A program made the position numbers and the translations under genes. Shown here in pieces: positions 140 through 22,034 of a DNA stretch of 64,000 bases (its first letter is position 1; each line of letters begins with the position of its first letter). Where the stretch lies: contig RDEW01000030.1 of NCBI GenBank assembly GCA_011109175.1, positions 118,094-182,093 on the forward strand, written 5' to 3'. This stretch comes from Dicyema japonicum (lineage: Eukaryota; Animalia; Dicyemida). A model generated the notes under the pieces. That model saw nothing but the letters and a program-made list of their open reading frames with translations. It was not told where the DNA came from and ran no database searches.

Positions 140-1200
140 GTGATAGTTATTTTTTGACAGTTTCTGAGTTTACACTAAGGCGAGAGTAGTGATATCGAGT
201 CCAAACAGGAAGCACTGATCTTGGGTAATCAAGAAATTAATTTAGCAACATTTTGGACGGTGGAATAAAAACATGTCAATCACTGAGTTTTTTGGCGAAT
301 TTAGATGCGGAAAAACCGAGCTCGCCCACACTTTATGTGGTAGCAGTCCAATTAGTAAATATTAGTGAGTTCCCAAATAAGTCAGTCAATTGGCCGACTA
401 AATAATTGGAAAGTTATGTACATTGACACAGAAACACATTTTTGTCATAATAATCAATTTAAGTCGTCCTGCCAGGCTGCACACAATTGCTGCCAGATTT
501 AAAGTCAATAACAAATCAAATGACCTCAGATTCGGGGGCAGGAATGAGGTTTTAATGAAGGGGATATAACACTAGTTTTCAACCGGACCCTAAGAAACCA
601 ATTGGAGGGCACGTTTTAGCTCATGCAAGCACAACTCGNCAATTTAGACGAGCAGTTTTTCCCCTTTTTAACGATAGGCGAGCATCAGATGGAGATTATG
701 AACCACATGGCTGCGAAATTCTACGAGGAGCCTGGAATTTTTAAACTTTTGGTAGAATTATTAAACTATGTCATATTGTGGACTCGATTATGGCTTTATT
801 CCTTGACTACTCTGGGAGAGGAGAACTTGCTGATAGGCAACAGAAATTTGGCAATTCTTATCCCGTTTGCAGAAGATATCAGGTGTTGTTGTGAGTTACA
901 TTAGAGTACGACGTTGCTGTGATGATAACAAATTAAATGACCTCAGATTCGGGGGCAGGAATGATGTTTTAATGAAGGGGATATAACACTAGTTTTCAAC
1001 CGGACCCTAAGAAACCAATTGGAGGGCACGTTTTAGCTCATGCAAGCACAACTCGCGTCTCTCTAAGAAAAGGGAGAGCTGAGAATATAATAACAAAAAT
1101 TTTTGATAGGTACGTAATGTGATCTACTAGTAGTCCTGAATTTTGAGAAAACGAAATCACGTTCTCTATTACAGACGGTGAAATCTCTGACGCTAAGGAC
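140..1200 (+). pseudogene. DMC1: DMC1 meiotic recombinase pseudogene (two partial, differently broken copies joined at n639)
   Basis: Hand translation gives TGSTDLGNILDGGI, SITEFFGEFRCGKTELAHTLC (Walker A), KVMYIDTE, EHQMEIMNHMAAKFYEEPGIFKLL (DMC1-specific, not RAD51), [40 protein letters not shown] and ENEITFSITDGEISDAKD. Introns are 20-24 nt (e.g. 444-463). There are frameshifts near 270 and 340 and in-frame stops (TAG TGA near 187, TAA at conserved TNQ near 933, TGA near 1144). Confidence 0.85.
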
Positions 1201-1291
1201 TTTATTAAGTTTATTAGTTTATCCATAAACCTTGTTGGAAGTTGTTTAAAAACGAATTCAAAGACTTTTCTTTCAGTCCAATTATTTAAAA

Positions 1292-2100
1292 TGTCGCGTG
1301 CTGGTTACATGTCACCTGTCAATCGATCTGTCACCTGTCGTTCAATGAATATTGATTTCTAATCAAATAATTAATTTTTTAAGTCCATCGTATTTTGAAT
1401 GATGAACGTTCCATTTTTGTTCATCCTCTTAAAATAGGCTAACTTTAAATTTGGTGAAAAAAATTCAGATCAAAATGATTTGCATCAGTTTTCTAGCATA
1501 ATTTATACAATAATTACCTGAAACATCTGAAATATGTTCCACGTCAATAGGAAAAAAATCATCCGAACCCTAACTTTCTTTGAAATTAAAAATAATAATA
1601 AATTTTTATACTCACGAATGACTGTGTTTATTCCAGAAACTCCTTTCAGTTTTATAAATGGAGTTTCATTAGTGAAGGAACGAAGCACTTTTACAGATAA
1701 CACCACGATTCTATTTCTATGGATGTACTTCGCCATGGTTCGCATTTCAGACTCATCCATGAAACAACTAATCTGTGCTTTTCAAATTTTTCGTCTTTGA
1801 TAAATGATTCGAATAAGATTTTCGATAATTCCACCAACCTTGCACATTTTTCTTCCCAACCATAAGAGAGTTGGCATATGAGGATTTACCCCGTAAGCAA
1901 ACTTTAGAGCAAAATTACGCGTTTTCTCAAATGTTTTGAAAATTGAGTCTCTTTTTTGAGTCGTACCATCCTTCTATACCGTTTAACATTGCAGGAAATA
2001 GTTGAAGACATAAAGAAAGGTCTCCGACTTGAGCTTTAGTTTTCTGACAGAAAACAGAGCGTTCGTAGCTTTTTTTCTTTCGTATTTTAGCATGTTCCAG
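1292..2100 (-). mobile_element. Ginger-like integrase DNA transposon remnant
   Basis: Starts with a TGTCGCG terminus. Minus strand 1500-1830 is clearly homologous to 59540-59800 inside the TIR-bounded integrase element. Confidence 0.5.
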
Positions 2101-2104
2101 AAAA

Positions 2105-3290
2105 TTACCAACCTTGGAGGCCAAGGTATTTCATAGTTTTCTTCCGAGGTATTTCTTGTAACGAGTTCTTTAGGCTAGCCATCCTCCTGCTTCCAGTTAT
2201 CCTCACCAGACCAGACTTCTCATTTGCAACTGAAAAAAAGTTTTCATTACACCACTCATCGATCTGGTCCATGTATATCTTCAACCGTTTCTCAGATACC
2301 AAAGGATTTAAAGAGACATCATAACTTATGACGTCATCAGCGTATATCAAGATTTTTGTAAGTTGGTTTTCTAGCAAGGCAGTTCACTCATTACAATGTA
2401 GAATAATAAAGGACTGAGCACTGAACCCTGAGGGACACCTCTTCTCAGCCAGATTTCACGAGACTCATAGTTAAAAAAATAACAATTGACCGTCTATCCG
2501 AGAGCAAACTTCGTATCCAAAAATAGTTTTTTTTCAACACCTCATATCGCAAGATAAATAAAAAGTCCAAGATGCCACACAGTGTCGAAAGCTTTGGATA
2601 TATTAAGGCAGACTGCGGTCAAACATCCTTTAGTTTCCAAAGCCTTCACAATTGACGTTAACACTGTACAACTAATCTCCACATGAGCGATTTTTTGTAA
2701 ACCCTACTGATACTCTATTGATAGATCATTACGTTCTATGTGTTCAGAGACTCTGTTAAATATCATTCTTTCCACAATTCTTGAGATTGTTGGTATAAGG
2801 CTTATGGGTCTATAACTGGTTGTTAAGTACCCAGGTTTCTCAGATTTACGTATCAGCCTGACCTCCGTCAATTTCCAATGCGAAGGTATATGACCCAACT
2901 CCATACTACAAGTATAAAGACATCAAAGATATTCATATAGTGTCTGAGATGCTTCCTTGAATAAACGCATAACGATCTAGTCCTTTCCAGGAGTATTGTC
3001 TTCAGTGCATTTTACCGCATTTTCAACTCCAGCATTTTCTGTGACTTAGAGGTAAAGAACTATGCTGTGTGAATCAAGTGTCTGCAGTATATATAAGCAG
3101 GAACTGCGTTCTCGAGCAATTTTTCAATAAAAATAAAAAATACAAATTCAAGCAAGAGATAATATGTTATTTCTGTTAACTGAAAGGACTGGATGGACTT
3201 GTGCAACATTGAAAATCTCCGCGTTTGTGACCTTGAGAGTTGGCTACATTTATATATAACAGCCCTGCCGCCAAGGAGTAGCAATGTTTC
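2105..3290 (-). mobile_element. Degenerate non-LTR retrotransposon RT fragment (Jockey/I-like)
   Basis: Motifs YRPISLIPTISRIVERM, YADDV and MKYLGL, interrupted by stops and frameshifts. Confidence 0.75.
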
Positions 3291-3349
3291 CACTAATAAA
3301 CCCCAGTTTAGGCAGAACTCCGACCTTACTTAAAAAGTAAGAACAGTAA

Positions 3350-3598
3350 TGCTAATTAATCCAAGGCATTGAAAATGTCCTTGATTTTTCGTTTGAGTGT
3401 GAATCCCAAAAGACAATCTAGTTCCGCAGCGATGAAACACGGGGTAACTCGTCAACCCCCAGTAGTTGTTAATTTGCTAATTAATCCAAGGCATTGAAAA
3501 TGTCCTTGATTTTTCGTTTGAGTGTGAATCCCAAAAGACAATCTAGTTCCGCAGCGATGAAACACGGGGTCACTCGTCAACCCGCAGTAGTTGTTAAT
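3350..3598. repeat. 125-bp tandem duplication containing a SINE-body fragment
   Basis: Two near-identical copies start at ~3350 and ~3475. The segment ctagttccgcagcgatgaaacacggggtaactcgtcaac resembles the antisense SINE body at 39390-39440. Confidence 0.8.
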
Positions 3599-3726
3599 TA
3601 TTGACTAATTTCTGTATTCTGGGTTAATAAATTAATCGATGTCCACTTATAAACTTGTTGGAACCACATATGTTAGAAAACGTGTAAGAAATGAATCTTA
3701 TAGCTATTTATGAACGTCATGGATAA

Positions 3727-5278
3727 ATGCAAATCATACTGAAAGAGGTTTCTCCACTAGAGAAGAAAGTGATAAACTCAGTGATTGAAAGAAATAATAA
3801 TGTTATATACAGAGAACAAAATCGAATTCAGTACAATTACTGAATTAGTCTTAGAAAGCTCAAAGAAGGGATTATGTTGATCAGAAAGTCAATTATTAAC
3901 AGTAACGTAAATGGGACCTGTTGTGACACGTGTGGTTGGACTTTTGATCCTAAATCAATGATGTACTGCTCCAAATGTGATATTCTAATTTGCATAAAAT
4001 GCTTTCACGGTGTTTCCAAACCAGAAAAATCCAGAATATGCCGATGGTGCTACAATTTAATGTATCCTACTAATAGTCATATTCAGGGAGTTCAAGAAGG
4101 TCTACCAGTGGCACCACCAGTTCAAAAGTGTCTCTCTCAGGCAGCTATACTTTGGTATTAATATCTTACTCACTCCAGTCGACGATAACCTGGTCAGCAT
4201 CAATGGAAACACGGAAAGGACAAAAATCACAGAGTCATCGTTAAATACATTTTAGGGAAGAGATTTTGGAGAAATTCGCTGACAAACATCAAAAGAATAC
4301 TGAAAAGGAAAAGAAAGAGGATAAGGTCGAAGTAATAGAAGAGGACGACATTCAAATTCCAAATACGTCTAATTATATTACCGGAGAGGTTTTACTGTTG
4401 GTAGACTACAACGAGTTTACGGAAAAGCTCAAAATTTACATATATGGGATGAGAGAACCCCCCGAGCACAAAATGAAGAATTGGTGTGTATTATAGCGCA
4501 TTATAGGTCTGCGGCTGTTCTGCTACTCCCTGATTTTAATAATTCTCAAAAAATTAAATTTAAATTGAAAAATTATAAGATCGATAAACTCATAGAAGTT
4601 AGATGCCATCTGTTTTTACTTTAGTACCACGTGGCCGAGCATCAGATTAATTCACTGAGCGTATTCATCCAATTTACAGCCAAAATACCTTGGAGGACAC
4701 GTGTCATTTACTCGGCTGAGGTGCATATAGCTATGGTCAAATATGATACGAAAATCTGGCATTCGTTGCTAAAAATTGTGAACTATTTATATTTAATGCA
4801 GACACGGCCACAATCTCAATATGCCCTGAGAATGAGGATTTTGGTCTCCATCGAAGACGGGACGTTGACGTTGACGGCCAAGTCTCTTGTGGGCTTAAAA
4901 GATTCAAAATCAACTCGTTATAAGATCGTCCTGTATTTAAACAAGTAAACCACTTTAGGATTGCGAATGACATTTTGATGGAAGGTCATAAATATTTGTT
5001 TGGAAGGAGATGGCTCATTTTCAATGAAAAATTCAAATTTGGAAATTTCAGCAAATATGACAATTTCAAAGTTCACATAGTAAGAATGAAGGGAGGAGAA
5101 TCCATTTTGGCAATAGAAGAGGTTGAAATGACAAAACGTACATTCCGTTTTCATTTTCTTAGCTCCAAGATCGCACCAAGTAATCATAAATGGGGGTAAA
5201 TTTCATTCTGTGAAAGAAGTGTTGCATCAAGCACAAACAGCTGAAATTATCCTTTACTTAAACCCAATAACCAAATAA
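3727..5278 (+). CDS. Synaptotagmin-like protein / rabphilin-family Rab effector (Rab-binding helix + Zn finger + two C2-like domains)
   Basis: Eight GT-AG introns (3831-3854, 4062-4086, 4155-4178, 4933-4958 and four more of 23-27 nt) give one stop-free ORF: MQIILKEVSPLEKKVINSVIERNNNVIYREQNRIQKLKE (Slp homology domain), CDTC..CSKC..CIKC..CRWC, and ITGEVLLLVDYNEFTEKLKIYI (C2 start). Ends in TAA at 5276-5278. Confidence 0.8.
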
Positions 5279-7579: not shown

Positions 7580-8870
7580 TAATATATTTTTGCGGTTCTT
7601 TCTCAGCCTAAGTGGAATTTGTGGAGAACGTCCACCTTGGAGGGGAAAGTAAAGGAAACCGGTCAAGTAAAGAAAACCGGTAGGTAACAAGAATGTAGCT
7701 ACCAATGACGTACGTTCCCAGAGTTCCAAAAGGTTGACCTTGTGCGGAGGAGAAACAGAAGACGGGTCAGGACACAAGAAAAGGTGATCTATGGTCATCA
7801 AATGCACATCAGGGAAAAAGTGGCGACTTTATATGCAAGGTCTTCTTCTATATGTAGGCATTGAGACTCATGTGGTGACAGCAACGGAGGCATGCCAGGT
7901 TTACCCGAATTCCAAGAGAAAAAGAAGATTTACTGACATTAATGCCCGATGGAAAGCGACCAAAAAGCTTGCTTAATCAAAGGCTTTGGATTGTATTTAT
8001 TGACACCGTATAGGTAAGAAGTCGGAGAACAACCTTGTTTGGGAAACCGGTAGCTCAAGTTTTGATGACGGAAGAAATTGATTTGTGGGGACGATCTGAT
8101 GCTTGCGCCCGCCCGATAACATATGGGATAATAGGAACACATCAACCACTGTTGATCTTCACATGAGTGACTTGTTAATGAAATNGTATAGGTAAGAAGT
8201 CGGAGAACAACCTTGTTTGGGAAACCCGTAGCTCGAGTTTTGATAACGGAAGAAATTGATTTGTGGGGACGATCTGATGCTTGCACCCGCCCGATAACAT
8301 ATGGGATAATAGGAACACATCAACCACTGTTGATCTTCAGCAGAGTGACTTGTTAATGAAATGAGTGAGACAGGAAGCAGCCTGGAATCATGCCCCCTTG
8401 GAAATACGGATCGGAATGTTTCTTGACTTCTGAATACGCGAGATGAAGAGCAGATCGTTCATGTCCAATTTAGGTAATTTTCGCATAAAGCAAGAATTGT
8501 TTCGAAGTGGTCGAATAAGCAGATTAGACAATCACAAATCGATTATCAGGAGCTCTGGATAATCACGCACAACCAATGTGGAGCTTGTGGGAGTTTGTCC
8601 CCTTACAGGTCTTGCAACGGGGAATAGATTTCAATAGAACAACAACTGAGAAATTTTTTCGTTTGCAACATCTTCGGGATCCTTCCAAACATAATTTAGT
8701 ATTTCGGTTTTTGAAACACCACTTCAGTCGACGAGACAACGCGGCGAAAAGATTATATTGCCAAATTATGACTAATACCCCATGAACCCATGTTTTTTCG
8801 AGATCTCGACAAAGAGTTAATTTATCATTCAAAAGTCTTAATTGAGCATTTTGTTTATGAGTCATCTAAT
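7580..8870 (-). mobile_element. Ingi-like LINE 3' part, degenerate (flank duplicated at n8185)
   Basis: C-terminus IDHLFLCP...LWERTSLVATFL resembles LWERPAFAASYI of the LINE at 21720-21760. Multiple stops. Confidence 0.55.
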
Positions 8871-9443
8871 TTCGTCAGAAAGCGTAAACAACCCAAATAG
8901 AGTGGTAATTAAGAGGTTATTGTTTCAAATACTCAGACTGGTTGTTTTGTCACTTTAATTGCTGACGATTAAGAATAATTGGCTGCGTCATATAAATCGG
9001 AAAAATAAACCAAAAACGAACTTCATCTAGTGAGTCGATGAAAATGACAATTTTGGTTAATATTTTATGTTTATTGAGCCGATTAAATACATACTGTTTT
9101 ATGCGATTTTAAAATGACCATCAAATTATCAATCAATAAGATTAATTCTCACAAAAAATAGATTTTTGAATTTTATTGGGATAACATTAAGTCAGTCAAT
9201 TGAATATAATATTTTTTTTATTTTTGAGGATAACCATATAATTATTTGAGATTTTTGTATCAATAAAATAGAATTTTGTGGAAAATATAATTCAATGTCT
9301 GATTTATGCGTTCATTGTTTTGATTTCACATCAAAATAGTAATCTTTGTTTTAAATTAAAATTAAATAAATATTTTAAATTATAAATTTAAAAATATTAA
9401 TAAATTGTTGTTTTTAGTATTATTTCTTTGTTTACACCTTTGG

Positions 9444-11606
9444 ATGCCCTCGAATCACCAAACTGAAAAAAATACGGAACCAAAACAGAAGACAGAAAAA
9501 CCAAAGAAAAAACCAAAGAAAGATTCTGATTTGGTTCCAAAGTCTAATTTCTTCCAAAGGCTTAATTCCCGTCAGTTGGATAGCTTTTCCTTCAAGGGTT
9601 TGAAAGGACAATCCCAGGAATTTAGCCAAAAAAACGTGGTTAACTCAGAAACAACAGATCAAATCAAACCTCTGGAACTTGGAAAATCCAAAACGCTGGG
9701 TCAAGTCGAATCCCCGGATTTAAACAAACCCCAGACTGTCAACATAGTCAAGTCTAATCAAGAACTCGTCAAATCCGAGTCTAAAACCCGTAAGCGGGGA
9801 CACAGAATGGNTCCAAAGTCTAATTTCTTCCAAAGGCTTAATTCCCGTCAGTTGGATAGCTTTTCCTTCAAGGGTTTGAAAGGACAATCCCAGGAATTTA
9901 GCCAAAAAAACGTGGTTAACTCAGAGACAACAGATCAAATCAAACCTCTGGAACTTGGAAAATCCAAAACGCTGGGTCAAGTCGAATCCCCGGATTTAAA
10001 CAAACCCCAGACTGTCAACATAGTCAAATCTAATCAAGAACTCGTCAAATCCGAGTCTAAAACCCGTAAGCGGGGACACAGAATGGTTGCCCGTGACGGA
10101 ACTATCCTCTACAAAATGACCCCTACGAACCAACTAATTCAGTCTATCCAACTGGGAATTGCTTCCCTTATTGGAAGAGTGGATAGGACGGAGGAACACG
10201 ACCTCCTCATGAAGGATTTCACAGTTGTTAAAACGATTATGTTTCCAAAAATCGGGTCCTTGATCACTCCCCCGCACTCTTTCGCGGATTTCCGTTTCCG
10301 TGCTTACGCTCCTATTGCTTTCCGTTTTTTCCGTATTGTATTCTACATATCTACCGATTTCTTTCTAGTAATCCGTTATATAACCAAAGTCTTCTATCTG
10401 TGGGGAGTCTCTGAAGGAACTATCCAACCCAGGAGCTTCAGGGAGCGTATTCTACAGGACTCCTGACGATAACTTCATAATAAAGACAGTCCAGCACAGA
10501 GAGGCTGCTTTTCTCCGTAGTCTGCTCCCTGGTTATTACATGGTATCGTTGTTGATTGATTGCAGAATATGAGTCAAAACAACAACACAATGCTGCCCAA
10601 ATTCTACGGATTGTACTCTTATGAGGTTGTTGTTGTGCCTACGTATAGAATCTGGGACGAAGTATTCGACTGATTGTGATGAACAACGCTTTACCGTCCA
10701 ATGTCCCCATTCAGGAGAAGTATGACCTCAAAGGCAGCACATACAAGCGGATGGCCTCCAAGAAGGAACGGAAGAAGGAGTCTCCGACCTTAAAGGACCT
10801 TGACTTTATATCTGTTCATAAGAAAGGTTTCTACATGTCCCCGCAACACTATGAAAACTTCTTCAACACTTTAAAACGTGATTCCAAAGTCTTGGAGAGC
10901 TTTAAAATAATGGATTACAGCCTCCTTTTGGGGGTGCACTACAGAGGGACCGCATTGGATGGACTGGACTCTTGTGAGCCAGTGATTGCTTCCGAACACC
11001 CAATTGCTAAGTCTGGTTTCGAATTGGCCCGTAGTGGAGTCTTATCCTTTAATTTCTCCCACAATGTTTTGTCGGGGTTTCCCTATTTGGTAACCGTAGT
11101 CGGGTTTTGCAAGGTGTACCCGCCAAAATGGCTGACGGACAAGATGTGGTGCTCTACGTGGCCATTATAGATATCCTGCAGAGGTACAGGGTGGCTAAGA
11201 AGATGGAGCATGTCTTCAAATCCTTAGTTACAGACGGGGTTGGTGCTTGTAATCAATGTAGGACATGGTGTCTGTCCATACTCCCAAATTCTATAGAAAA
11301 CGGTTTCTTAATTTTATAGGGAAGTATTTTCACTCTCTTGATGGTTGGTAGTGGTGATATCTAGATAATGGAATTCCGTTGGAGGTTAAAATATCGTCCG
11401 CAACATCGGATTTTACCAAATCTACTTACCCCTCCTGCAGTAGTGGACGTATGACTACTCTAGACAAGAAGTTTTTTCTGAAACCGTCCTCGGATTACCA
11501 GATATCCAATATTGATACTTTTTGTACGTCGGAGACGAGAACAACCAAGGATAAATTTGTGTCGGGGGATAGTTTTGGATATAGGTCAACAGGTTGGATT
11601 TTATAG
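9444..11606 (+). CDS. PIP5K1: Type I phosphatidylinositol-4-phosphate 5-kinase
   Basis: Spliced with introns 10368-10389, 10543-10565, 10626-10648, 11077-11099, 11239-11261 and 11344-11364 (21-23 nt). Gives [90 protein letters not shown] and VSVHTPKFY. The N-terminal repeat 9536-9810/9812-10090 straddles an n and is probably an artefact. Confidence 0.93.
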
Positions 11607-11904
11607 TCATTATAGATTTTTGATATATTAATTATTCACTTTTTTGATAAAATCTTATTTAATTGATTTTTACTTAGTGTTAATCATTTAAGAGAATCAG
11701 GGATCATTAAACGATATTTTGGGACATATCTATTATACAGATGTCCAATCATCTAAGCAAATCACTATAATTCCAGCTGATTCAACTGATATAATAGTCA
11801 AAAATTAGAATTATGCCTTAATATCACGAGACCAATCTCGAAGAACTGCTCTTGGTGATTTTAACAAATCACAGTGTTTTGGTACCAAAAACCAATTATC
11901 TCAA

Positions 11905-12330
11905 GAGATATTATTATTACCCCAGGATCACTGGGTCGAAGAGAAAGAAAACTTCTCAACTAACTAAGTGGTACCAGATCGACAAGGGAGAGGACGATTC
12001 CGGTGGGGTCGAGAATCCTGACTGCTCTTCTCATCGGTAATGGCATCTGCTCAAACTTTCTGTATGATTTTTGATATTTTGATTTTGTATTGAACAAAGG
12101 GCTCGGTAGACTAGTCGTCTTTAAGAGTTTCTTTTGTAATTCTATCAAGAGATTTTCAAAGCGTTGGATTTTGTATCAACAGAGATTTGAAACATGGTGT
12201 CATGGGGTTCATTTGTTATTTTGTATTGACAAAGGGCTCGGTAGACTAGTCGTCTTTAAGAGTTTCTTTTGTAACTATATCAAGAGATTTTCAAAGCGTT
12301 GGATTTTGTATCAACAGAGATTTTAAACAT
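11905..12330 (-). mobile_element. LINE 3' end with (TAA)n tail and internal ~136-bp duplication
   Basis: IELQKKL..PMRRAVRILDPTGIVLS..LS* is homologous to 50375-50560. The 3' end gacccagtgatcctggggtaataataat is shared with 50590-50620. Confidence 0.75.
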
Positions 12331-12394
12331 GGTGTCATGTGGTTCACCTGTTATTGTGGTGGCGCTCATTGCAAATTCAGCATGGAAGAGAACC
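12331..12394 (+). ncRNA. HDV-like ribozyme-shaped element at a LINE 5' remnant (possibly inactivated)
   Basis: P1 GGUGUC/GGCGCU, P2 GGUUC/GAACC, P3 ACC/GGU, P1.1 UG/CA, P4 UGC/GCA. J4/2 reads UGGAAGA and lacks the C seen in other copies. Confidence 0.55.
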
Positions 12395-12769
12395 GTTCGA
12401 CATTCCTTACCCTTCTACGACTTTCAGAAGAGTGCCCTACCAACAGAGATAAGCATTTGTATGTCATGAAACAATAGGTCTAATAGCCAAGACATTCCGG
12501 ATGCGCGTTGTTTTGTTATTTCTTATTTCATATTTTTCCTTGATTATTGTTTTTTATATAAAAATTCATTTTCTTAAATATATGGAGTCATGTTGTGCTA
12601 CGTGGCTAATCAATTAAAGTTTTCTATTATTTTGTTTGTTCCTCCTCTTTCCCTACCAGAGTGGCGTCATGTGATCCACCTGTCTCAGGTGGCGCCCAGT
12701 GCCACTCTGGCACGAAAAAGGANAAGTTTTCTATTATTTTGCTTGTTCCTCCTCTTTCCCTACCAGAGT

Positions 12770-12831
12770 GGCGTCATGTGATCCACCTGTCTCAGGTGGC
12801 GCCCAGTGCCACTCTGGCACGAAAAAGGATC
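12770..12831 (+). ncRNA. HDV-like ribozyme-shaped element (solo; flank copy at 12663-12722 truncated by n)
   Basis: P1 GGCGUC/GGCGCC, P2 UGAUCC/GGAUCA, P3 ACC/GGU, L3 UGUCUCA pairing with CA (P1.1), P4 UGCCA/UGGCA, J4/2 CGAAAAA with a candidate catalytic C at 12820. Confidence 0.7.
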
Positions 12832-14209
12832 ATTTGCTTCCTCCACTCCACTGGAAGGGTAATGAAAAGTGTTAATTCTATAATTCGTGACTATTAATGA
12901 AAATACATAACATCAATCATATCTGCTCCATCTCAGAAATTTGTTCAAACGATAACAGAGAAAATTATATAAAAAATCATTTAAAATGTTAAAAAATTCA
13001 AAAAATTCGAGCAACGTCATTCACTAAACTGGCCAGGTATTGAAAGAAATAAATGTACTTATCCAAGCAAATTTCTTAAACGTTAATATTTTTACATTTC
13101 TCCCAAAAATATAGCCAAATATAAAATTTTTATGAAAAAATTCTTCTTCGATCATCTCCGACCGAATCCAACTCCCAATGAAAAATGACTTATATGTGTC
13201 CCAATGAAAATGACTATAGGTTCTGGATGCAGTATATGAAAGAGAAAGTCTCTGCTTATTCGACCATGGGAACTGGATACGTTTAATTAGTCGCTAACTG
13301 TTAACTTCTTTTTCCGGGGTTAATGAATAAATGCTATTGGAGTACCCATCGATCTGAAACTTATGGGATATTGACAAAGGTATAATTATCAATGATAAGC
13401 ACAATAGTTTAATGTTTCCTGATCTTGAAAATTCTTCGAGTCTTTCCACACATTCCGACACCTGTTGTGATGGTTTATGTTTATCTCCACCTTTTCCAGT
13501 GAACCGTACTTTTCTTTACCAGATACTAAGAAAATTAGTCAGAAGGACAAAGACACGTGCTCGATTCATACCAAACAGACATAATTTTATTTTAAGAAAA
13601 TTACAGTTATGATATTTAATGAAGGAATTTTCTGACAAAAAAGTGTCATGAGTAGAATCACATGAGCTATCATTATGCAACTTCTGACGAATGATCCTCC
13701 AAGTTCTTTCAATCTTGTCAGACGAGATTCGTACTTGGATTCTCTTACGCTCAACGCTTCCTTTGTTTGAAGCTTTGGGTTTTCAATGTCCCCCGTCTAT
13801 CACCTCGTCAGTATACACGAGAAGGAGTAAGACATGGGTTTTCGTTTAACATGAAGCTAAATAGACATTCTGTGCATAAAAGGGACGTCATCACCTTAAC
13901 TACGATATTGCTTATTAGTTTTTCTATGATCAACTCCAGTCATGTCCACTCCCCATTACAAATGGACTTAACTGAAGTTTATAGTTTATCAAATTTCATT
14001 AACCTGTTTTGAAAATAGTCACGTGTATGAGTGATGCTTCCCATGCTGTTGTATAATCTGTGGATGGAACGTTAACAAAAAAAAACCACTTGATCGTAAA
14101 TTATTAATATTTTTCTCATCTTTAATTTAAGATTATAATTAGGAATTATTAAATTATAATAAATATTAAATTAAAAATAAATAATTTAAATCTATAGTGT
14201 ACGTTTGTT

Positions 14210-14574
14210 ATGGTTGTTAGTACGACACATCGAGTAATTAATGAAATAACAAATAGGTTGGGGAGATATTTTCTATTGGTGGACATGCATTTGAACTCTT
14301 TTCAGATGTCATCAATCAATTGAGTTCTGTGTCCTTTAACGAGTAAAAGCTTACTTTTATTATAGAACATGGACGGAGGAAGACATTCAGTCGGTAAAGT
14401 CAGCTCTAAAGAGATTCTCAAGTGACATAAACGAAATAGCCCTGTCCATTAAAAATAGGACAATGTAACTTTAATGATAATTGTAGTAAACAAATCACTT
14501 CTCAGCTAAGGTCTCAAGCATTTAAGGAGGCTGGAATCAAAGATGTCCCCCCTCCACCTAATTCTAATAATTAA
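14210..14574 (+). CDS. BAP18: Chromatin complexes subunit BAP18 (SANT-like) homolog
   Basis: Introns 14234-14256, 14343-14365 and 14465-14486 give MVVSTTHRVGEIFSIGGHAFELFSDVINQL..TWTEEDIQSVKSALKRFSSDINEIALSIKNRTIKQI. This is colinear with BAP18 KVGEIFSAAG..KWTETEIEMLRAAVKRFGDDLNHISCVIKERTVAQI. Confidence 0.85.
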
Positions 14575-14589
14575 TCATTTGTTTGATAA

Positions 14590-15034
14590 TTTAAATAATT
14601 GATTTATTATTTCTATTCTAAGCTTACTAGCTTGTGCCTCGGCCAGCAAGAGAAGTAATCTAATTCTTGACTCCTTAGAAAAATCACCCGAACATCCACA
14701 CGAGGATTCCAGAAGAAATGATAGCCCATTATCATACGACCAATCAGTTTCTTCCTCAAAAGTTGGGCCACTAATTTCATGGAACGTCTCCTACGACCTC
14801 CGCATTGATCACATTTCAATCTGACCTATTTCAAGGTATTCAAAGATAGGAATTTAATGGGATTTGAGTCCCCAACATTTGATTCCATCTACACGGCAGT
14901 GGTCTATCTAAATCGCTTAATCTTAACAAAAAAAGCCGTTTGTTCCTCGGGCAGTGTAGAAATGCTATAACCCCACGGTCGATTCTGAAAATCGTTCCCT
15001 TATAAAGAAGAGGAACGCTCTGAATATGAACCAT
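14590..15034 (-). CDS. Probable small host gene of unknown function (splicing unresolved)
   Basis: ATG at 15034; protein-like open frames and several GT..AG segments of 22-26 nt; converges on the BAP18 3' end. No family recognised. Confidence 0.3.
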
Positions 15035-15228
15035 CTCTTTATTTTATCTCCTCTCATTTATTTATTAACCCTGGATACACCGAGAAAGAAGTTAAAGTAA
15101 CCAACTAATTAAGTGTATCCAGTTTCCACTTCTACAGAAACAGAATCCATACGGAATCAGCATAAAAGGTAAGACGTCCATTACATGCAATTGTGGAAAC
15201 CCCTCCAGTGGAGTGGGGGAGAGCAAAT

Positions 15229-15289
15229 GATCCTTTTTCGTGCCGGCCTGGCACTGGGCGTCACCTAGACAGGTGGATCACATGGCGCC
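15229..15289 (-). ncRNA. HDV-like ribozyme-shaped element (solo)
   Basis: Reverse strand: GGCGCC AUGU GAUCC ACC UGUCUA GGU GACGCC CAG UGCC AGGCC GGCA CGAAAAA GGAUC. The P4 loop differs from 12770 while the stem is kept. Confidence 0.65.
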
Positions 15290-15384
15290 AATCTAATAAA
15301 AAGAGACAGGAGGAACAGACAAGAAAGCAGAAAACTTCAACCAATTAACCACGCAACACCACATGGCGCCACGCGGATAATCTC

Positions 15385-16330
15385 ATGAATATAAGATGTT
15401 TAAACCAAAGAATCAAAAACCTTGAAAGAGCGAAAAAAAGTATTGGGACCAATCTCATCATCCATTGGACAAATGAAATCCACAAGACTTTTTTGGAATA
15501 CAATCTTTATTCAACAAACCATTTATTATTTATCGATGATCTGAAGATACTCGCCGAGAAAGAAAATACGATGGTTAGAATGATGGAAGAGATTGATGAT
15601 TATTTCGATGTTGTTGGTCTCAAGAGAAGTTATGAAAAGTCGGCAACCTGGAATCCATAAATGAAGTGAGATGTCTGGGTGGACACGGAAGCTATCGGTA
15701 CCTCGGTGTTTTAGACGACAATGGAAGTAATGTCATTAAGTCTTGAACACTATTGCTGAAATGTGAGAAAAAGGATATAAACTTGGTGCATACAAAGCTC
15801 AATGCTGTAAACCGTTTTAAAGCCATAAATTAGAGTCAGTTGTCTCCCTGTAATTACTATATTGGTTAATATTGAACCAAAGGAGTTTGAAAATATATAG
15901 ATTTGGATATTATATATGTCAAAGTATAAAAATCACCTGAAGCCCAAAAACAAGGAGAGATTATATATTAGTCGAACTAAATTGAAGAGAAGGTTTATTG
16001 TCCGAGTGAACTTATGTTGTACTGTTTCTGACTGATATGGAAAAAAATCGAATATTTCGCTAAGAAAGGATGGAATCTTGCGGGTCTTGAAAACAAAGAA
16101 AACGCATATGACCACGATCGCTAGATTCTTATCTTTCAAGTACAATATAGATCCACGTGCTACAGAAAGTTTTGTTGATTGATGCGCCAATATGAGCTTA
16201 TATTCAATCGGTGGTTTTAAAGAAACCATTAGAAAGTATGATTGTCGAGAAAACATGGAGTCAAGACACCAATTGATGAAATCCTTTACGCGTCGAGGCG
16301 ACTGGAAAAGCTAATAACTAGGGCAACCAG
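15385..16330 (+). mobile_element. R4/Dong-like (RLE-type) non-LTR retrotransposon, RT segment
   Basis: NHLLFIDDLKILAE...VGLKRSYEKSA, YRYLGV and KERLYISR motifs, with stops. Confidence 0.65.
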
Positions 16331-16519
16331 AAAATTGCAATCTTTTATTTTAAAAAGTTGCAAAAAAAAATTGTAAAAATTTGCACTATGGAAAAATAAA
16401 CGAAATTATTTATTGTAATACGAAATTAAATTTTCCTGAACATCAGGTTTAAAGTTTCAATTTTTAGTGAGAATTTTCGTCAAATATTATGGCTCTCGTG
16501 AAAGTGCTAATAATAATAA

Positions 16520-18207
16520 GATCTCATCCCAATCACGTTGCCTCGAAGGATCGTTCGGCGTATCCAAACCAGTTTCACACCATTCGCGACGAGCTTCGTC
16601 GAAGATTTTTTCCCAAAAAAGTCCGGTTGGAAAACGTAGGATATTTTGGACCAAAAGGCTTCCACTTGAGAGCGATGACACATTGCCTCGAAGGATCGTT
16701 CGGCGTATCCAAACCAGTTTCACACCATTCGCGACGAGCTTCGTCGAAGATTTTTTCCCAAAAAAGTCCGGTTGGAAAACGTAGGATATCTTGGACCAAA
16801 AGGCTTCCACTTGAGAGCGATGACACACATTCTGGTAAGATTATCTCCAACGCCGATTTGAGACCCGTACCTCCGAGGCGTGTAGGAAGCTTGCATTGAT
16901 TCCAATTTGGCACGTCAAAGTGGATGTTTAGAAGCAATTCGGCTGATTTTCTCAATGTTCTATCCAGTGACTGGAGGATGTCACGATGTTTGAAGCAGGG
17001 AGAACAACAGAGAGCATATAAGAGTTTGGGTAAGCTAATGCTATTCTTCAAAAGGCTGATTTTCTCAATGTTCTATCCAGTGACTGGAGGATGTCACGAT
17101 GTTTGAAGCAGGGAGAACAACAGAGAGCATATAAGAGTTTGGGTAAGCTAATGCTATTCTTCAAAAGGAAGAACGTTGTATAAACTTCGAGTAAGGAGAG
17201 TTTCTCCGTAACTCTAGAGAGTTCATCCTCCTTTATTAGTAAATGGCTCCGCAGTTCCTTTTCTTCAAGTGGACACCCACAAAAGTATGTCCGCTCCCTG
17301 GGTACGACAGTAATTCCAGGTATTACCGAGTTGAAAGACTCGACCACGTTGATAAAATCACTCTCCGAGTATGTGATATTTATTAGTCCGAGGTTTGTAG
17401 TGCCGGCAAGAAATATGACAGAACGTCATGAACTTTTCTCCACGAGCTTCCAATCAGGGAGTCATCAAAATACCAGAGGTATAGTTCTGTGTTGATTGAG
17501 CAAACTATTTCATAGATGGCCAGAGCGAAGATAAAGTTGGTCCCCTTGTTGGACTCCAGTCTGCGAACAAATAATCTTGTCCCCGAAAACCAATGAAGAG
17601 TTAGTTGCGTAAACGAGGTAGACGAGTGGAATAAGTTCAGGGGCTCTTTTGCTTGTAGTTTCGAAAATTTGATCCCTCCGCAGTGAATTGAAGGCGTTGC
17701 AGATATCCAGCTTGACCCCAATGTGTGGGTTTTGTTCGTCTTTCTGTCCAAATAAACACCTAGCAGCATACACTGCCGCCTCGCATTCGTTCCTTACACC
17801 GACCTCCAGTTGGAGGGGAAAATTCTTCAGATACATCATGCGATTTTCACTGTCAGTCTTCTGAAATAGTTGCCGACCGCGATAGAGCGGACTCCACCTT
17901 CGGGTTTTTTGAAGGCTAGTAGATGTGCACCGAAAAGGTCCTTGGGTAATGAACAATTCACAATACAATTATATTCAATTAACATAAATTTTTTTTTTTT
18001 TTTTTCATCNACACCGACCTCCAGTTGGAGGGGAAAATTTTTCAGATACATCATGCAATTTTCACTGTCAGTCTTCTGAAATAGTTGCCGACCGCGATCG
18101 AGCGGACCCCACCTTCGTGTTTTTTGAAGGCTAGTAGATGTGCATCGAAAAGGTCCTTGGGTAATGAACAATTCACAATACAATTGTGAATTATATTCAA
18201 TTAACAT
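16520..18207 (-). mobile_element. CRE-clade non-LTR retrotransposon RT region, degenerate
   Basis: KPEGGVRSIAVGNYFRRL, VGVRNECEAAVYAAR, VKLDICNAFNSLRRD, TGVQQGD, WYFDD, FLLKNSISLPKLLYAL and KLPTRLGGTGL. Internal duplications at 16538/16683, 16941/17054 and n18010. Confidence 0.8.
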
Positions 18208-18900: not shown

Positions 18901-19099
18901 GTTAATTTATTTTTGACGTTAATCTTATCTTATTATTTTTTAGTTTAAATAACTAGTGCACATTGCCTTTTTTGTTTCCGATGTGGTACACTTTCACCTA
19001 GAAAAAATTGAATACAATTCAATCTGGCAACTAAAATAACCAAAACTACTTCCCTGTCAACTTGTTCATCGACCGCTGGCAAGTCGGAATGGATTATGG

Positions 19100-21830
19100 T
19101 GGCTATTGAGCAGGCGTATAGCTTTCGCTCAAGGATCGGATTGGCTACTCCTAATCCTCGCTGGGGACATCAAACAGAAACCAGATCCCCACAAAAATGG
19201 GAAATTCCTCAATTTCATTCAATTTAACATAAATGGGCTTGAACACAAATCCACTGAGCATATTATCTTTCTCACCCCCAGAAAATCGATATTGCCCTCC
19301 TATAGGAAACGAAACTATCCAGAAAAACAATTCTTCCTTATTTCAAAGAATATTCAATTGTCCGCCGCGACCGACCTAATTCTAGCGTGTGCTCTCCCTT
19401 ATACACAAATCTATTCTTTTTTTGTGATACTTCTACTTCACCACCCAATATTTACATCCCATATGAAACTATATTGTAGTAATAATCCTCAAAATTGGCT
19501 AAATTACAAACGATTCAAAATGACATAATCTGCAGAGAACTAAACGCCAAAGACTTTGGCTAATCGGTCAAAAGGGTAATTAGATGGGGGTTCAGATCCT
19601 ATCTCTACTTGAACAACTAGTCATTCTCAATAACAAAAAATTCCACATTAAGCCCAAGAAGATCCTTCGGATCTATGATCTTTCAGATTGATTTTACTAA
19701 AATCTGTAGTATCAAAAATTGTTGAATGTGTTGTATCAAAATTAATGTCGAAGTATCTTTCCTTACCAGATTCTCAAGATGGATTTCGTCCGCAATAATC
19801 AACATCAACGCATCACTCCACCCTAAATCAGTAAACCGCTTCAATAATTGCAATCCTCCCAAACGGACTATCCTTGCATCGATTGACCTAACCAAGGAGT
19901 TTGATCGAACATCAAGTAACCAAATTCTTGCATATCGAATTCATCCACGTCTTCAGAATTATCCTCTCTGGAAGACTTGGTCGAACTGAANTAACATCGG
20001 AGTATCTTCCCTTCACAGATTCTCAACATGGATTTCGTCCGCAATATTCAACATCAACGCATTTCTCTACCCTAACTCAGTAAACCGCTTCAATAAATCT
20101 TTCCAAACGGACTATCCTTGCATCGATTTACCTGACCAAGGATTTTGATCGAACATCAAGTAACAAAATTCTTGCATATCGAATTCATCCACGTCTTCAG
20201 AATTATCCTCTCTGGAAGACTTGGTCGAACTGAAATTATGTCTTTTCTATCTCACTAACGATTCCTTCTAAACGGCGTCTCCCAAGGCTCCGTTTTGTCT
20301 CCTAACTTATTCTATTGCACCTAGCGATATTCTAACCAAGACACTTATATCATATGCGGATGACCAGATTATCGCTTCTACAGACAGTGACGTTAGCGAA
20401 GCAACAAAGGATGTCCAGAACCACTTGAACTCTCTTTAAGAGTAGCTTAAAACAAATCACCTTTTCTGTTGAAATCCACCATCACTCTAATCACATCTAA
20501 CCGCCGCCAACTAAATTCTCAGCCAATATTAACAATTCATGGGCAAACACTCCTCGTTACAAAATATCATAAAATACTTGGAGTCATTTTCCACCAACTA
20601 CTGACTTTTTTGAACCATGTGGGGAACAATGTAAAAAACCCTCTCCCAAAATCAACATACTAAAAGCTGTGTCAGGCCATTCTTTCATCCAAAGCAAAGA
20701 GGCCCCAACGATCATATAAAAAATTCAATTAACTATGCAAGTCCTTGTTGGTCAACCCCTGCCTCCCTCAATTCAATCGATAAACTACAAAAAGTCCAAA
20801 CCATCGTGATCAGAACAATTACTGGATGTCTCAGATCAACCCCCTGATCATCTTCACTGGGAATCAAAAATACTTCCCATTGGAAAACATTTGGAAATGA
20901 GAGCTCTGCAGTTCCTCTCCCATGACTACAGCTCAAATCATCCCTGTCATTCTCTATGCAAATCTTTAAAAAAAATTATTGTGATAACCAGTGACCTGTC
21001 TCGAATGCTATGATCTATCCCTTCCACCACCAATGACTGGCGTTGTCTGAAACAGATACACAGCTATGTTTCTATGAGAACCATCCTAAGACTCGGTGAT
21101 GATAAATTACTATACCGGCACCCTCCTCCAATAGACCAATCGGAATCCTCTTTCCGAAGGATATCTGAGTAAACCTGGCTTCTACGATGTGGGCACCATT
21201 CCCTCTACCGACGTACGTGTGTAAACTGGATTATGTAAAACGATGTCCTATATTCCTTTTGTAACCTCTNCTGCAGTGTGGAAAGCAGCCCTGCCATCGA
21301 TCCCCATATTTACTGTGAAGGACAGAAGGATCGAGTCGCGAACGACCCTCCTGAGCTTCTCAATTCCTCGGACTCCTCTAAAATACAGTCCAATATTGGG
21401 CTTATTTGTGAAGAGTCCTTGTACCACGTGGGCCGCTGTGTCGCAGACCACACGTGAGATGTCCTCATAATCCTCAAGATTTCGTAACGCACGTGTTGTG
21501 ATCTTTTTAAATCGCTTTGCACCTGACTTTCCTCCTTTTCCACCTTTCCCACGTCCAGACATGCTTCTACGATGTGGGCACCACCCCCTCTACCGACGTA
21601 CGTGTGTAAACTGGATTATGTAAAACGATGTCCTATATTCCTTTTGTAACCTCTCCAAGTTTACGGCAAACCACCTTTAGAATGTTCTAAGTTAGTACAA
21701 TGTCAAGACCGTTTTATCTATGGGAGCGACCGGCATTTGCTGCGTCTTACATAATAGCCGATGGTCTCCTGTAAAATAGTGAGGTCTGGGATACTTAACT
21801 AACTAAGCCTTTTGGTTGAGCTGGTGAAGT
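19100..21830 (+). mobile_element. Ingi-like LINE (decayed 2A, APE, RT, C-terminal LRCGH motif)
   Basis: WLLLILAGDIKQKPDP, FIQFNINGL, DSQHGFRPQYSTST, YADD, KILGVIF and LRCGHH. Many frameshifts; n joins at 19991 and 21270. Confidence 0.75.
21271..21562 (-). CDS. Histone H4-tail-bearing ORF with divergent body (3' truncated by n)
   Basis: [20 protein letters not shown] versus H4 [21 protein letters not shown]. The body has only patchy H4 helix-2 likeness (GLYFRGV..L..VVRDSI versus GLIYEETRGV..L..VIRDAV). Open for 97 codons; about 48% GC by rough hand count. Confidence 0.6.
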
Positions 21831-22034
21831 TGCTCTTAAACATTAAATCTGGAAACATGAAATTCATGGACTATAGACTTCTCCCTTTTGACGTTCAATG
21901 TCAGGAGGCTCATATAGTGTTGATAGTCATTATCAAATTGTCTAATATATATTTTGGTAACATAAATATAAATTATTCTTAACTATCTGATTTGTCGGAC
22001 TATCCTTGCATCGATTTACCTAACCAAGGAGTTT

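Follow-up and report, generated by a model that had tools for sequence, protein, structure and literature searches.

A histone-headed open reading frame at a faulty contig join is probably a dead fragment of a mobile repeat

Introduction

R1 and R2 are site-specific non-LTR retrotransposons that reside in the rRNA genes and depend on this host gene. The RNA of R2 is freed by a ribozyme, with no use of a host start codon, and the rRNA itself is non-coding. Host sequence is also found at the 5' end of retrotransposed copies of other elements, as in LINE-1 5' transduction and in the template switching that gives rise to U6-L1 chimeras. Histone sequences in unusual settings are known from viruses: the bracovirus protein CpBV-H4 has a full histone fold with an extended tail, while viral histone mimics are short convergent motifs.

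Here, we analyzed an open reading frame with the start of a histone H4 gene in the window, by which we mean the whole stretch of 64,000 nt. The element that we propose as its source would resemble R1 and R2 in its association with a multicopy, highly transcribed host gene family, in the lack of a promoter of its own and in co-transcription with the target gene. It differs from R1 and R2 in that its open reading frame is apparently translated from the histone ATG and from 21–26 histone codons that travel with the element. It has in common with LINE-1 transductions and chimeric retrogenes the host sequence at the 5' end, the sharp junctions and the dispersed dead copies, but here the pieces consist of coding sequence in frame, are nested with H4 ahead of H2B, and are common to diverged copies, which suggests that they are functional parts of an element rather than accidents.

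Two comparisons concern the histone sequence itself. Residues 1–21 are identical to those of two variant H4 proteins (P0001 and P0002), but there is no histone fold past residue 21, and the real H4 gene departs at nt 64. Like CpBV-H4 and the viral mimics, the sequence places a histone tail in another context, but the tail here duplicates the start of a host gene verbatim at the DNA level. Neither a viral context nor a full H4 fold bearing an extended tail was found, and the flanking DNA consists of decayed LINEs from a eukaryotic genome. The literature searched, whose coverage is incomplete, yielded no account of LINEs that target histone genes or carry histone heads, which is weak evidence of novelty.

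Results

A three-part open reading frame

On the minus strand of the window, an open frame of 97 codons extends from an ATG at 21562 to 21272, just short of the N at 21270. It is not a histone but a chimera with three parts, namely H4 codons 1–21, H2B codons 20–25/26 and a body. The piece has a G+C content of 49%, as compared to 36% for the window, and is single-copy within the window. The features of the region are listed below, where L003 is a 2255-bp contig with genes for H2A, H2B and H4 and the start of H3.

21500..21562, minus strand: head 1, nt 1–63 (codons 1–21) of a variant histone H4 gene (61/63 identity to L003 1380–1442)
21480..21499, minus strand: head 2, about 20 nt of a variant histone H2B gene, codons 20–26, TTRALR (blastn, 20/21 versus L003)
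21271..21479, minus strand: body, an orphan reading frame belonging to a high-copy repeat and truncated where the contig begins (depth, variants, frame continuation)
21270, no strand: single-N contig join, one of nine in the window, with duplicated flanks
21178..21269, plus strand: end of the left contig, host LINE 3' region, 92 nt equal to 21563–21654 (98% identity)
21563..21654, plus strand: right contig, host LINE 3' region, directly adjoining the H4 ATG (repeat comparison)
19052..20663, plus strand: decayed host LINE with endonuclease and reverse-transcriptase remnants, the piece lying in its 3' continuation (tblastn, open reading frame)

The first-pass annotation, which was made from the sequence alone, had recognized an H4 tail with the equivalents of K5, K8, K12 and K16. 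We obtained the same result for the first ~21 residues from an alignment to the variant H4 and from a phmmer search against all PDB chains, in which histone H4 was the only match (E ~0.02, residues 1–29 aligned). The similarity, previously counted as 16 of 21 positions, is closer than that: the tail is identical to the variant H4 encoded on L003 at 21 of 21 residues, and at the DNA level the two differences among the 63 nucleotides are both synonymous. The identity of the head to octopus H4 genes, by comparison, is 87%.

A word-indexed search covering 5.8 billion proteins returned only two entries, both named "histone H4-like" and both matched via the tail. One (P0001) is filed under the ant Vollenhovia emeryi and the other (P0002) under Octopus sinensis; both start with the exact 21 N-terminal residues of the window and continue with LIDNIQGITKPAIRRLCRRGG... 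Among the matches listed of 6958 H4 hits, the Cys-rich H4 variant was confined to these two sources, and the other H4 proteins listed were at most ~81% identical to it. The contig filed under Vollenhovia emeryi has the accession number DF945167.1, and two octopus histone clusters (L001 and L002) were also included in the comparison.

The second head was identified by blastn, with 20 of 21 positions identical between 21480–21500 in the window and 772–792 in L003, inside the H2B gene at 716–1084. It is read in the native H2B frame. In all, H4 contributes nt 1–63 and H2B approximately nt 58 to about 79; each piece keeps its native frame, which is also that of the body. The joins between H4, H2B and body are sharp, with an overlap of 0–1 nt, and the predicted peptide across the junction is KKITTRALRNLEDYEDISR.

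The variant histone genes carry AATAAA signals and contain no Rfam stem-loop, which suggests that their mRNAs are probably polyadenylated and abundant. A TATAAA motif is located 29 nt upstream of the H4 ATG, where the octopus loci have AAAATA.

The source gene in public reads

We placed Logan contigs from four runs (X1, X2, X5 and X6) on positions 21271–21900. Three of the runs are from organism A, two of them from one sample and the third from another, and the fourth is from organism B. The sequenced runs are probably not from the assembled individual, since they contain only 9–46% of the sampled words, and few of the about 790 contig pieces were listed. The 63-nt head reaches a depth of up to 1e6, which is a depth summed over Logan contigs and not a copy number. 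At both ends of the head the contigs depart from the window sequence: behind 21562 they enter the H4 5' leader, in a version that in organism B is identical to L003, and before 21500 they enter H4 sequence that codes for LIDNIQGI (24 X1 contigs, agreement 0.99). A full-length variant H4 thus exists separately and diverges exactly after codon 21. The first-pass annotation had asked whether a canonical H4 gene is present elsewhere; what the reads contain is a variant H4 with the same head, at very high depth, which leaves the window sequence at nt 64.

The contig join and the flanking LINE

The N at 21270 had been overlooked in the first reading. The window contains nine single Ns, and at all nine joins the sequence that precedes the N recurs after it, at 91–99% identity. 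At seven of the joins the right contig starts inside the left contig, and at the joins at 639 and 21270 the right contig opens with about 290 bases (~285 at 639) that are absent from the left contig. Since all nine joins are flanked by duplicated sequence, the 92-nt repeat, which had been noted earlier as LINE sequence abutting the ATG, is an unmerged contig overlap rather than a demonstrable target-site duplication. The ATG does adjoin LINE sequence, and 21178–21269 does recur at 21563–21654, at 98% identity. What is represented here are overlapping contigs, one in which the host LINE is uninterrupted and one in which the histone-headed piece meets the LINE at 21562/21563. Single-N joins duplicate sequence in this assembly, and apparent repeats or insertions in contact with an N should be distrusted.

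The host LINE is located on the plus strand, with an APE domain at 19052–19383 and an RT domain at 19997–20170, as identified by tblastn of LINE proteins, and with an open reading frame for the C-terminal part of the RT at 20469–20663. The best matches of the window to LINE proteins are only 34–35% identical. The open reading frame of the piece is on the minus strand, and its antisense orientation relative to the LINE, as first described, was confirmed. We also considered a minus-strand LINE that ends at the ATG. This was rejected: to the right of 21563 the minus strand shows neither an open reading frame nor similarity to RT, and on their left the 92 nt lead on into LINE sequence of the plus strand. 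If a target duplication was formed at the insertion, it would begin at GCTTCTACG.

A less likely alternative for the placement of the piece is an assembly chimera, in which the piece is real in the genome and the junction at 21562/21563 was made by the assembler or by a gap closer. The piece begins directly after a single-N join in a window where nine of nine joins are faulty, and the right contig at 639 likewise opens with unmatched bases. No bridge over 21562/21563 was found among the listed contigs of X1, X2, X5 and X6, which hold 9–46% of the sampled words, and records 5 and 6 of X1 end at 21563 with 9 unlike letters. The head is, in addition, extremely abundant and of a sequence type that is prone to mis-joins by assemblers. 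Against this, the absence of a bridge comes from a few listed pieces of runs that are probably not from the assembled individual, and a join exactly at the ATG is also what a full-length cDNA would show if it came from an H4-driven transcript whose leader is very short, given the TATAAA motif 29 nt upstream. A chimera of this kind concerns only the location of the piece and is compatible with its identity as a mobile repeat. The first-pass annotation had cautioned against a chimera, which holds for the 92-nt repeat, an artefact, and for the ATG/LINE junction, which no listed contig bridges, but not for the fusion of H4, H2B and body, which is real.

The body is a repeat with shared junctions

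The body has a depth of 9,000–61,000 in X1, as compared to 350–4,200 for most of the adjoining host LINE. It is thus 10–50 times deeper than most of the flanking LINE, in terms of Logan depths that sum all contigs and are not copy numbers; the runs may be of DNA or of RNA, and expression could account for some of the signal. With distance from the 5' end there is an uneven tendency toward greater depth, from ~12,000 to ~55,000. The body was recovered from two samples of organism A and, at ~91% identity, from the run of organism B.

Record 4 of X1 (66 nt, 5 mismatches) covers the body, the H2B piece and the H4 head. Both junctions are thus shared by a diverged copy, which shows that the mosaic has been copied as a unit and that the fusion of H4, H2B and body is no artefact. 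The 5' junctions vary among other copies, with departures at 21472, 21486 (in X5) and 21500. In the organism B copy the H4 sequence reaches nt 75, and an in-frame linker of 15 nt, with no match to H4 or the window, leads into the body at nt 91. A large number of dispersed copies that differ at their 5' ends, as expected for a non-LTR retrotransposon, is therefore indicated by the three departures, by the 10–50-fold greater depth and by the tendency of the depth to rise toward the 3' side.

The open frame does not end with the contig. In X1 and X5 it extends at least 10 codons past 21274–21276 (...GADISSQSAV and ...VADIPTHLAV), and a contig of X5 reads 21271–21303 free of mismatches and then 78 nt beyond. 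The motif CTGCAGT had been taken to mark the end of the segment, and CTGCAG is indeed found at both 21271 and 20906, but it is no boundary, as the X5 contig reads through it. This is ordinary sequence, and the copy in the window is simply cut by the contig start. For the same reason, a PstI site left as a cloning scar was rejected. Among the copies, the frame is open over 97 codons and at least 10 more in two variants, and none of the 16 listed variants is a stop. Eight of the 16 are synonymous, against an expected share of 24–29%, a weak excess (P ~0.01–0.07).

These copies also bear on a second alternative, a one-off chimeric retrocopy in which a reverse transcriptase that had started on some RNA switched first to an H2B mRNA as template and next to an H4 mRNA, leaving a dead mosaic outside any propagating family. 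The short histone pieces with sharp joins and 0–1 nt overlaps would fit such an event, as would histone mRNAs that are probably polyadenylated and abundant, given their AATAAA signals and the lack of an Rfam stem-loop. We consider it improbable in view of the diverged copy (5/66 mismatches) with the same two junctions, the high copy number of the body, and the reading frame, which is kept across both junctions and across the different junction in organism B. A captured retrocopy was the option of the first-pass annotation that came nearest to the truth, although the histone pieces were most likely carried within the RNA of a mobile element.

The body does not encode a histone

Beyond the heads, the body comprises 70 codons, and the window contains only 229 nt of it. 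The scattered H4-like motifs that had been noted in it are attributable to chance: Smith-Waterman scores against the H4 core were 24–27, and scores as high were obtained with 246–908 of 1000–2000 shuffled sequences. Likewise, alignments of the body to the variant H2A, H2B, H3 and H4 scored at the level of shuffled sequences. An origin of the body from another histone was rejected; the best candidate was H2B, for which 33 of 1000 shuffles reached the score and the alignment was not colinear. A frameshift that hides a canonical H4, as had been suggested, was not found, and no frame of nt 64–292 resembles the H4 core.

Searches for relatives and folds gave concordant results. Pfam returned no match for the 97-aa open reading frame at E-values up to 10, and a histone fold (three helices; Pfam CENP-T_C / Histone, with PF15511 for H4) was found neither by Pfam nor by the alignment statistics nor in any frame of nt 64–292. 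An exhaustive phmmer search of 1.84 billion representative proteins yielded only three bacterial repeat proteins, with spurious matches in multiple stretches. The best score against ESM Atlas features was 0.82, which is at chance level, and an AF2 model built without an alignment had a pLDDT of 45.7 and no confident fold. At the RNA level, Rfam gave nothing for the piece at the gathering threshold or at E-values up to 10, and the fold z-score was –1.6; a ribozyme-defined 5' end at the ATG is not supported. No second copy of the body and no continuation of it was found in the window, the four fetched histone loci, the JGI metagenome contigs or the contigs of prokaryotic genomes.

In light of these results, it is very unlikely that the open reading frame is a genuine cellular gene, either for a divergent H4 variant or for a histone-tail mimic that decoys histone modifiers. 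The equivalents of K5, K8, K12 and K16 are retained in the tail, and the frame is open, extends past the contig start and has an excess of synonymous changes, all of which such a gene would also show. However, no histone fold was detected by Pfam, phmmer or alignment statistics, and the tail is a copy, at the DNA level, of the H4 start followed by an H2B fragment, which makes it a mosaic rather than a diverged paralogue. There are also hundreds of copies with varied 5' ends, and the copy in the window has no promoter or 5' leader. Both the novel H4 variant and the tail-mimic decoy that had been put forward in the first reading can therefore be set aside: the head is a literal copy of 63 nt of the host H4 gene, followed by a 20-nt piece of H2B, and beyond the copied heads lies a high-copy repeat.

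Least likely of all is contaminant DNA of another organism joined to host sequence, for which the nearest H4 gene, on a 2.2-kb contig filed under Vollenhovia emeryi, and the restriction of the variant otherwise to Octopus sinensis contigs could be cited (at least one of these ant and octopus H4 records may itself be contamination), but head, body and host LINE all occur in the same runs of organism A, from two samples, with the variant H4 at very high depth there and the body found in the organism B run as well.

Discussion

A probable histone-headed mobile repeat

We conclude that the 291 bases are probably the 5' end of one copy of a dispersed, high-copy mobile repeat, most likely a non-LTR retrotransposon, with a histone-headed first open reading frame. 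The copy in the window is probably a shortened, dead fragment of this repeat, situated at a faulty contig join, and it is probably inert, with no histone promoter preceding it. The contig begins at 21271, which accounts for the absence of the remainder of the element. The evidence for a retrotransposon consists of the copy number and the variety of junctions, and no endonuclease, RT, 3' end or target-site duplication of the element is visible in the 229 nt of the body in the window.

The body was absent from the four fetched histone loci. Other observations at histone genes suggest a LINE. We infer that the repeat is the ORF1 of a LINE, partly from LINE 3' ends that are located just upstream of variant H4 starts in Octopus sinensis. 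In this species, the protein model P0108 consists of a LINE RT C-terminus that reads into the variant H4, and in L004 an RT remnant at 8562–10219 ends 130 nt before the H4 ATG. The units upstream of the variant H4 ATGs diverge 9–18 nt before the ATG, into A-rich ends that bear AATAAA, and such ends have the look that would be expected of LINE 3' ends inserted there.

A likely sequence of events that would produce the mosaic can be outlined. The first open reading frame of the element would have no start codon of its own and would be headed by pieces of the host variant H4 and then H2B genes. Initially, an element resident in an H2B gene may have acquired the H2B head. A copy shortened at its 5' end could then have landed in an H4 gene, after codon 21, and been transcribed from the H4 promoter, and the RNA, including both heads, may finally have been copied antisense into the 3' part of an older LINE. 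More generally, an element residing in the variant histone genes would be transcribed from their promoters; translation of its open reading frame would begin at the histone ATG and run through the head, which would travel in the RNA. Successive residences would stack heads, and off-target insertions would lack a promoter and be inert. Given the TATAAA motif 29 nt upstream, the H4 transcript may start within a few bases of the ATG, so that the full-length cDNA of an H4-driven element transcript would begin at the ATG.

We propose only tentatively, as something short of an even chance, that all of these elements hold jointly: that a family of retrotransposons has dispensed with a promoter and start codon of its own and uses the promoters and the first 21–26 codons of polyadenylated variant histone genes, that the heads borne in its RNA stack (H4 over H2B), that the copy in the window is an off-target, full-length cDNA of an H4-driven transcript, and that insertion is accompanied by a large target duplication that spans the start codon. 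Such a duplication would start a few bases before the ATG, end at about +63/+79 and leave the histone gene intact. It would account both for the LINE 3' ends before the histone ATGs and for the LINE 5' ends fused after codons 21–26.

For histone biology, the open reading frame represents neither a new H4 variant nor a tail decoy. For the biology of mobile elements, it is a dispersed copy that carries two stacked heads outside any histone gene. A dispersed, doubly headed copy supports the idea that borrowed histone start codons travel with the RNA of the element. If this is true, a parasite protein would be translated from the start codon and tail of a host gene, and such a mode of expression would be unusual for a LINE.

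Single-N joins and false duplications

All single Ns of the window (639, 6207, 8185, 9811, 12723, 18010, 19991, 21270 and 22233) are contig joins, and at all nine the 91-275 nucleotides preceding the N recur after it with 91-99% identity. The single-N joins give rise to false tandem duplications in the window, one of which accounts for the doubled peptide within an open reading frame that adjoins a kinase-like one:

9405-10466: open reading frame with the doubled peptide
10676-11170: phosphatidylinositol-phosphate-kinase-like open reading frame

At the join at 639, the right-hand contig opens with approximately 285 bases (640-924) that are missing from the left contig, followed by the overlap, in which 508-638 corresponds to 925-1055. 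This is the second case in the window of extra bases in the right contig ahead of the overlap, and the segment may represent another structural variant or a mis-join.

The H4 head and its LINE surroundings

In the public run X5, read as Logan contigs, the H4 head (21500-21562, minus strand) was also recovered in contigs in which it starts at nucleotide 14 or 21 and is preceded by unrelated sequence (window 21500-21549), at depths of 11,000-18,000, which are sums over contigs and not copy numbers. These contigs are additional head variants or 5'-truncated copies, and ATGCCTTCT lies out of frame in one of the sequences preceding the head. The open reading frame of the body (21271-21479) includes an imperfect palindrome of 50 nucleotides (21370-21418) that is 80% self-complementary, and the predicted fold of the whole piece is unexceptional (z = -1.6). 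In the 3' region of the host LINE, the 43 nucleotides at 21716-21758 occur once in the window and constitute a very high-copy short motif, with a depth, again summed over contigs, of about 65,000 in the public run X1, or roughly 15-190 times that of the flanks. The X1 contigs depart from the window sequence at both ends of this stretch.

In Octopus sinensis, a LINE lies ahead of an H4 gene. The NCBI gene model for the "histone H4-like" protein P0108 has an N-terminal extension of 73 residues that corresponds to the C-terminal end of a reverse transcriptase encoded by a LINE. This LINE is decayed and stops 130 nucleotides upstream of the H4 start codon, on the same strand:

L004 (octopus histone locus), 8562-10657: LINE remnant and H4 of P0108

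Variant core histone genes

A full set of cysteine-rich variant core histones (H2A, H2B, H3 and H4) is near-identical in the octopus clusters L001, L002 and L004 and on L003, a contig of 2.2 kb (DF945167.1) filed under the ant Vollenhovia emeryi. Among 6958 H4 matches, the H4 variant is confined to L003 and Octopus sinensis sources, and the ant-filed contig may reflect cross-contamination with cephalopod DNA. This distribution may also point to an octopus as the source of the genome to which the window belongs. A near-GTGCTTCCGGAAAAAAC motif, repeated in both orientations, precedes each variant histone gene (L003 591-674, 1278-1335 and 1921-1998). Because AATAAA signals are located downstream of these genes (L003 1689-1780 and 1085-1170; L001 after 8726, 5954 and 14233) and no histone 3' stem-loop was identified in L003 with Rfam, their sequences look like those of polyadenylated rather than replication-dependent histone genes.
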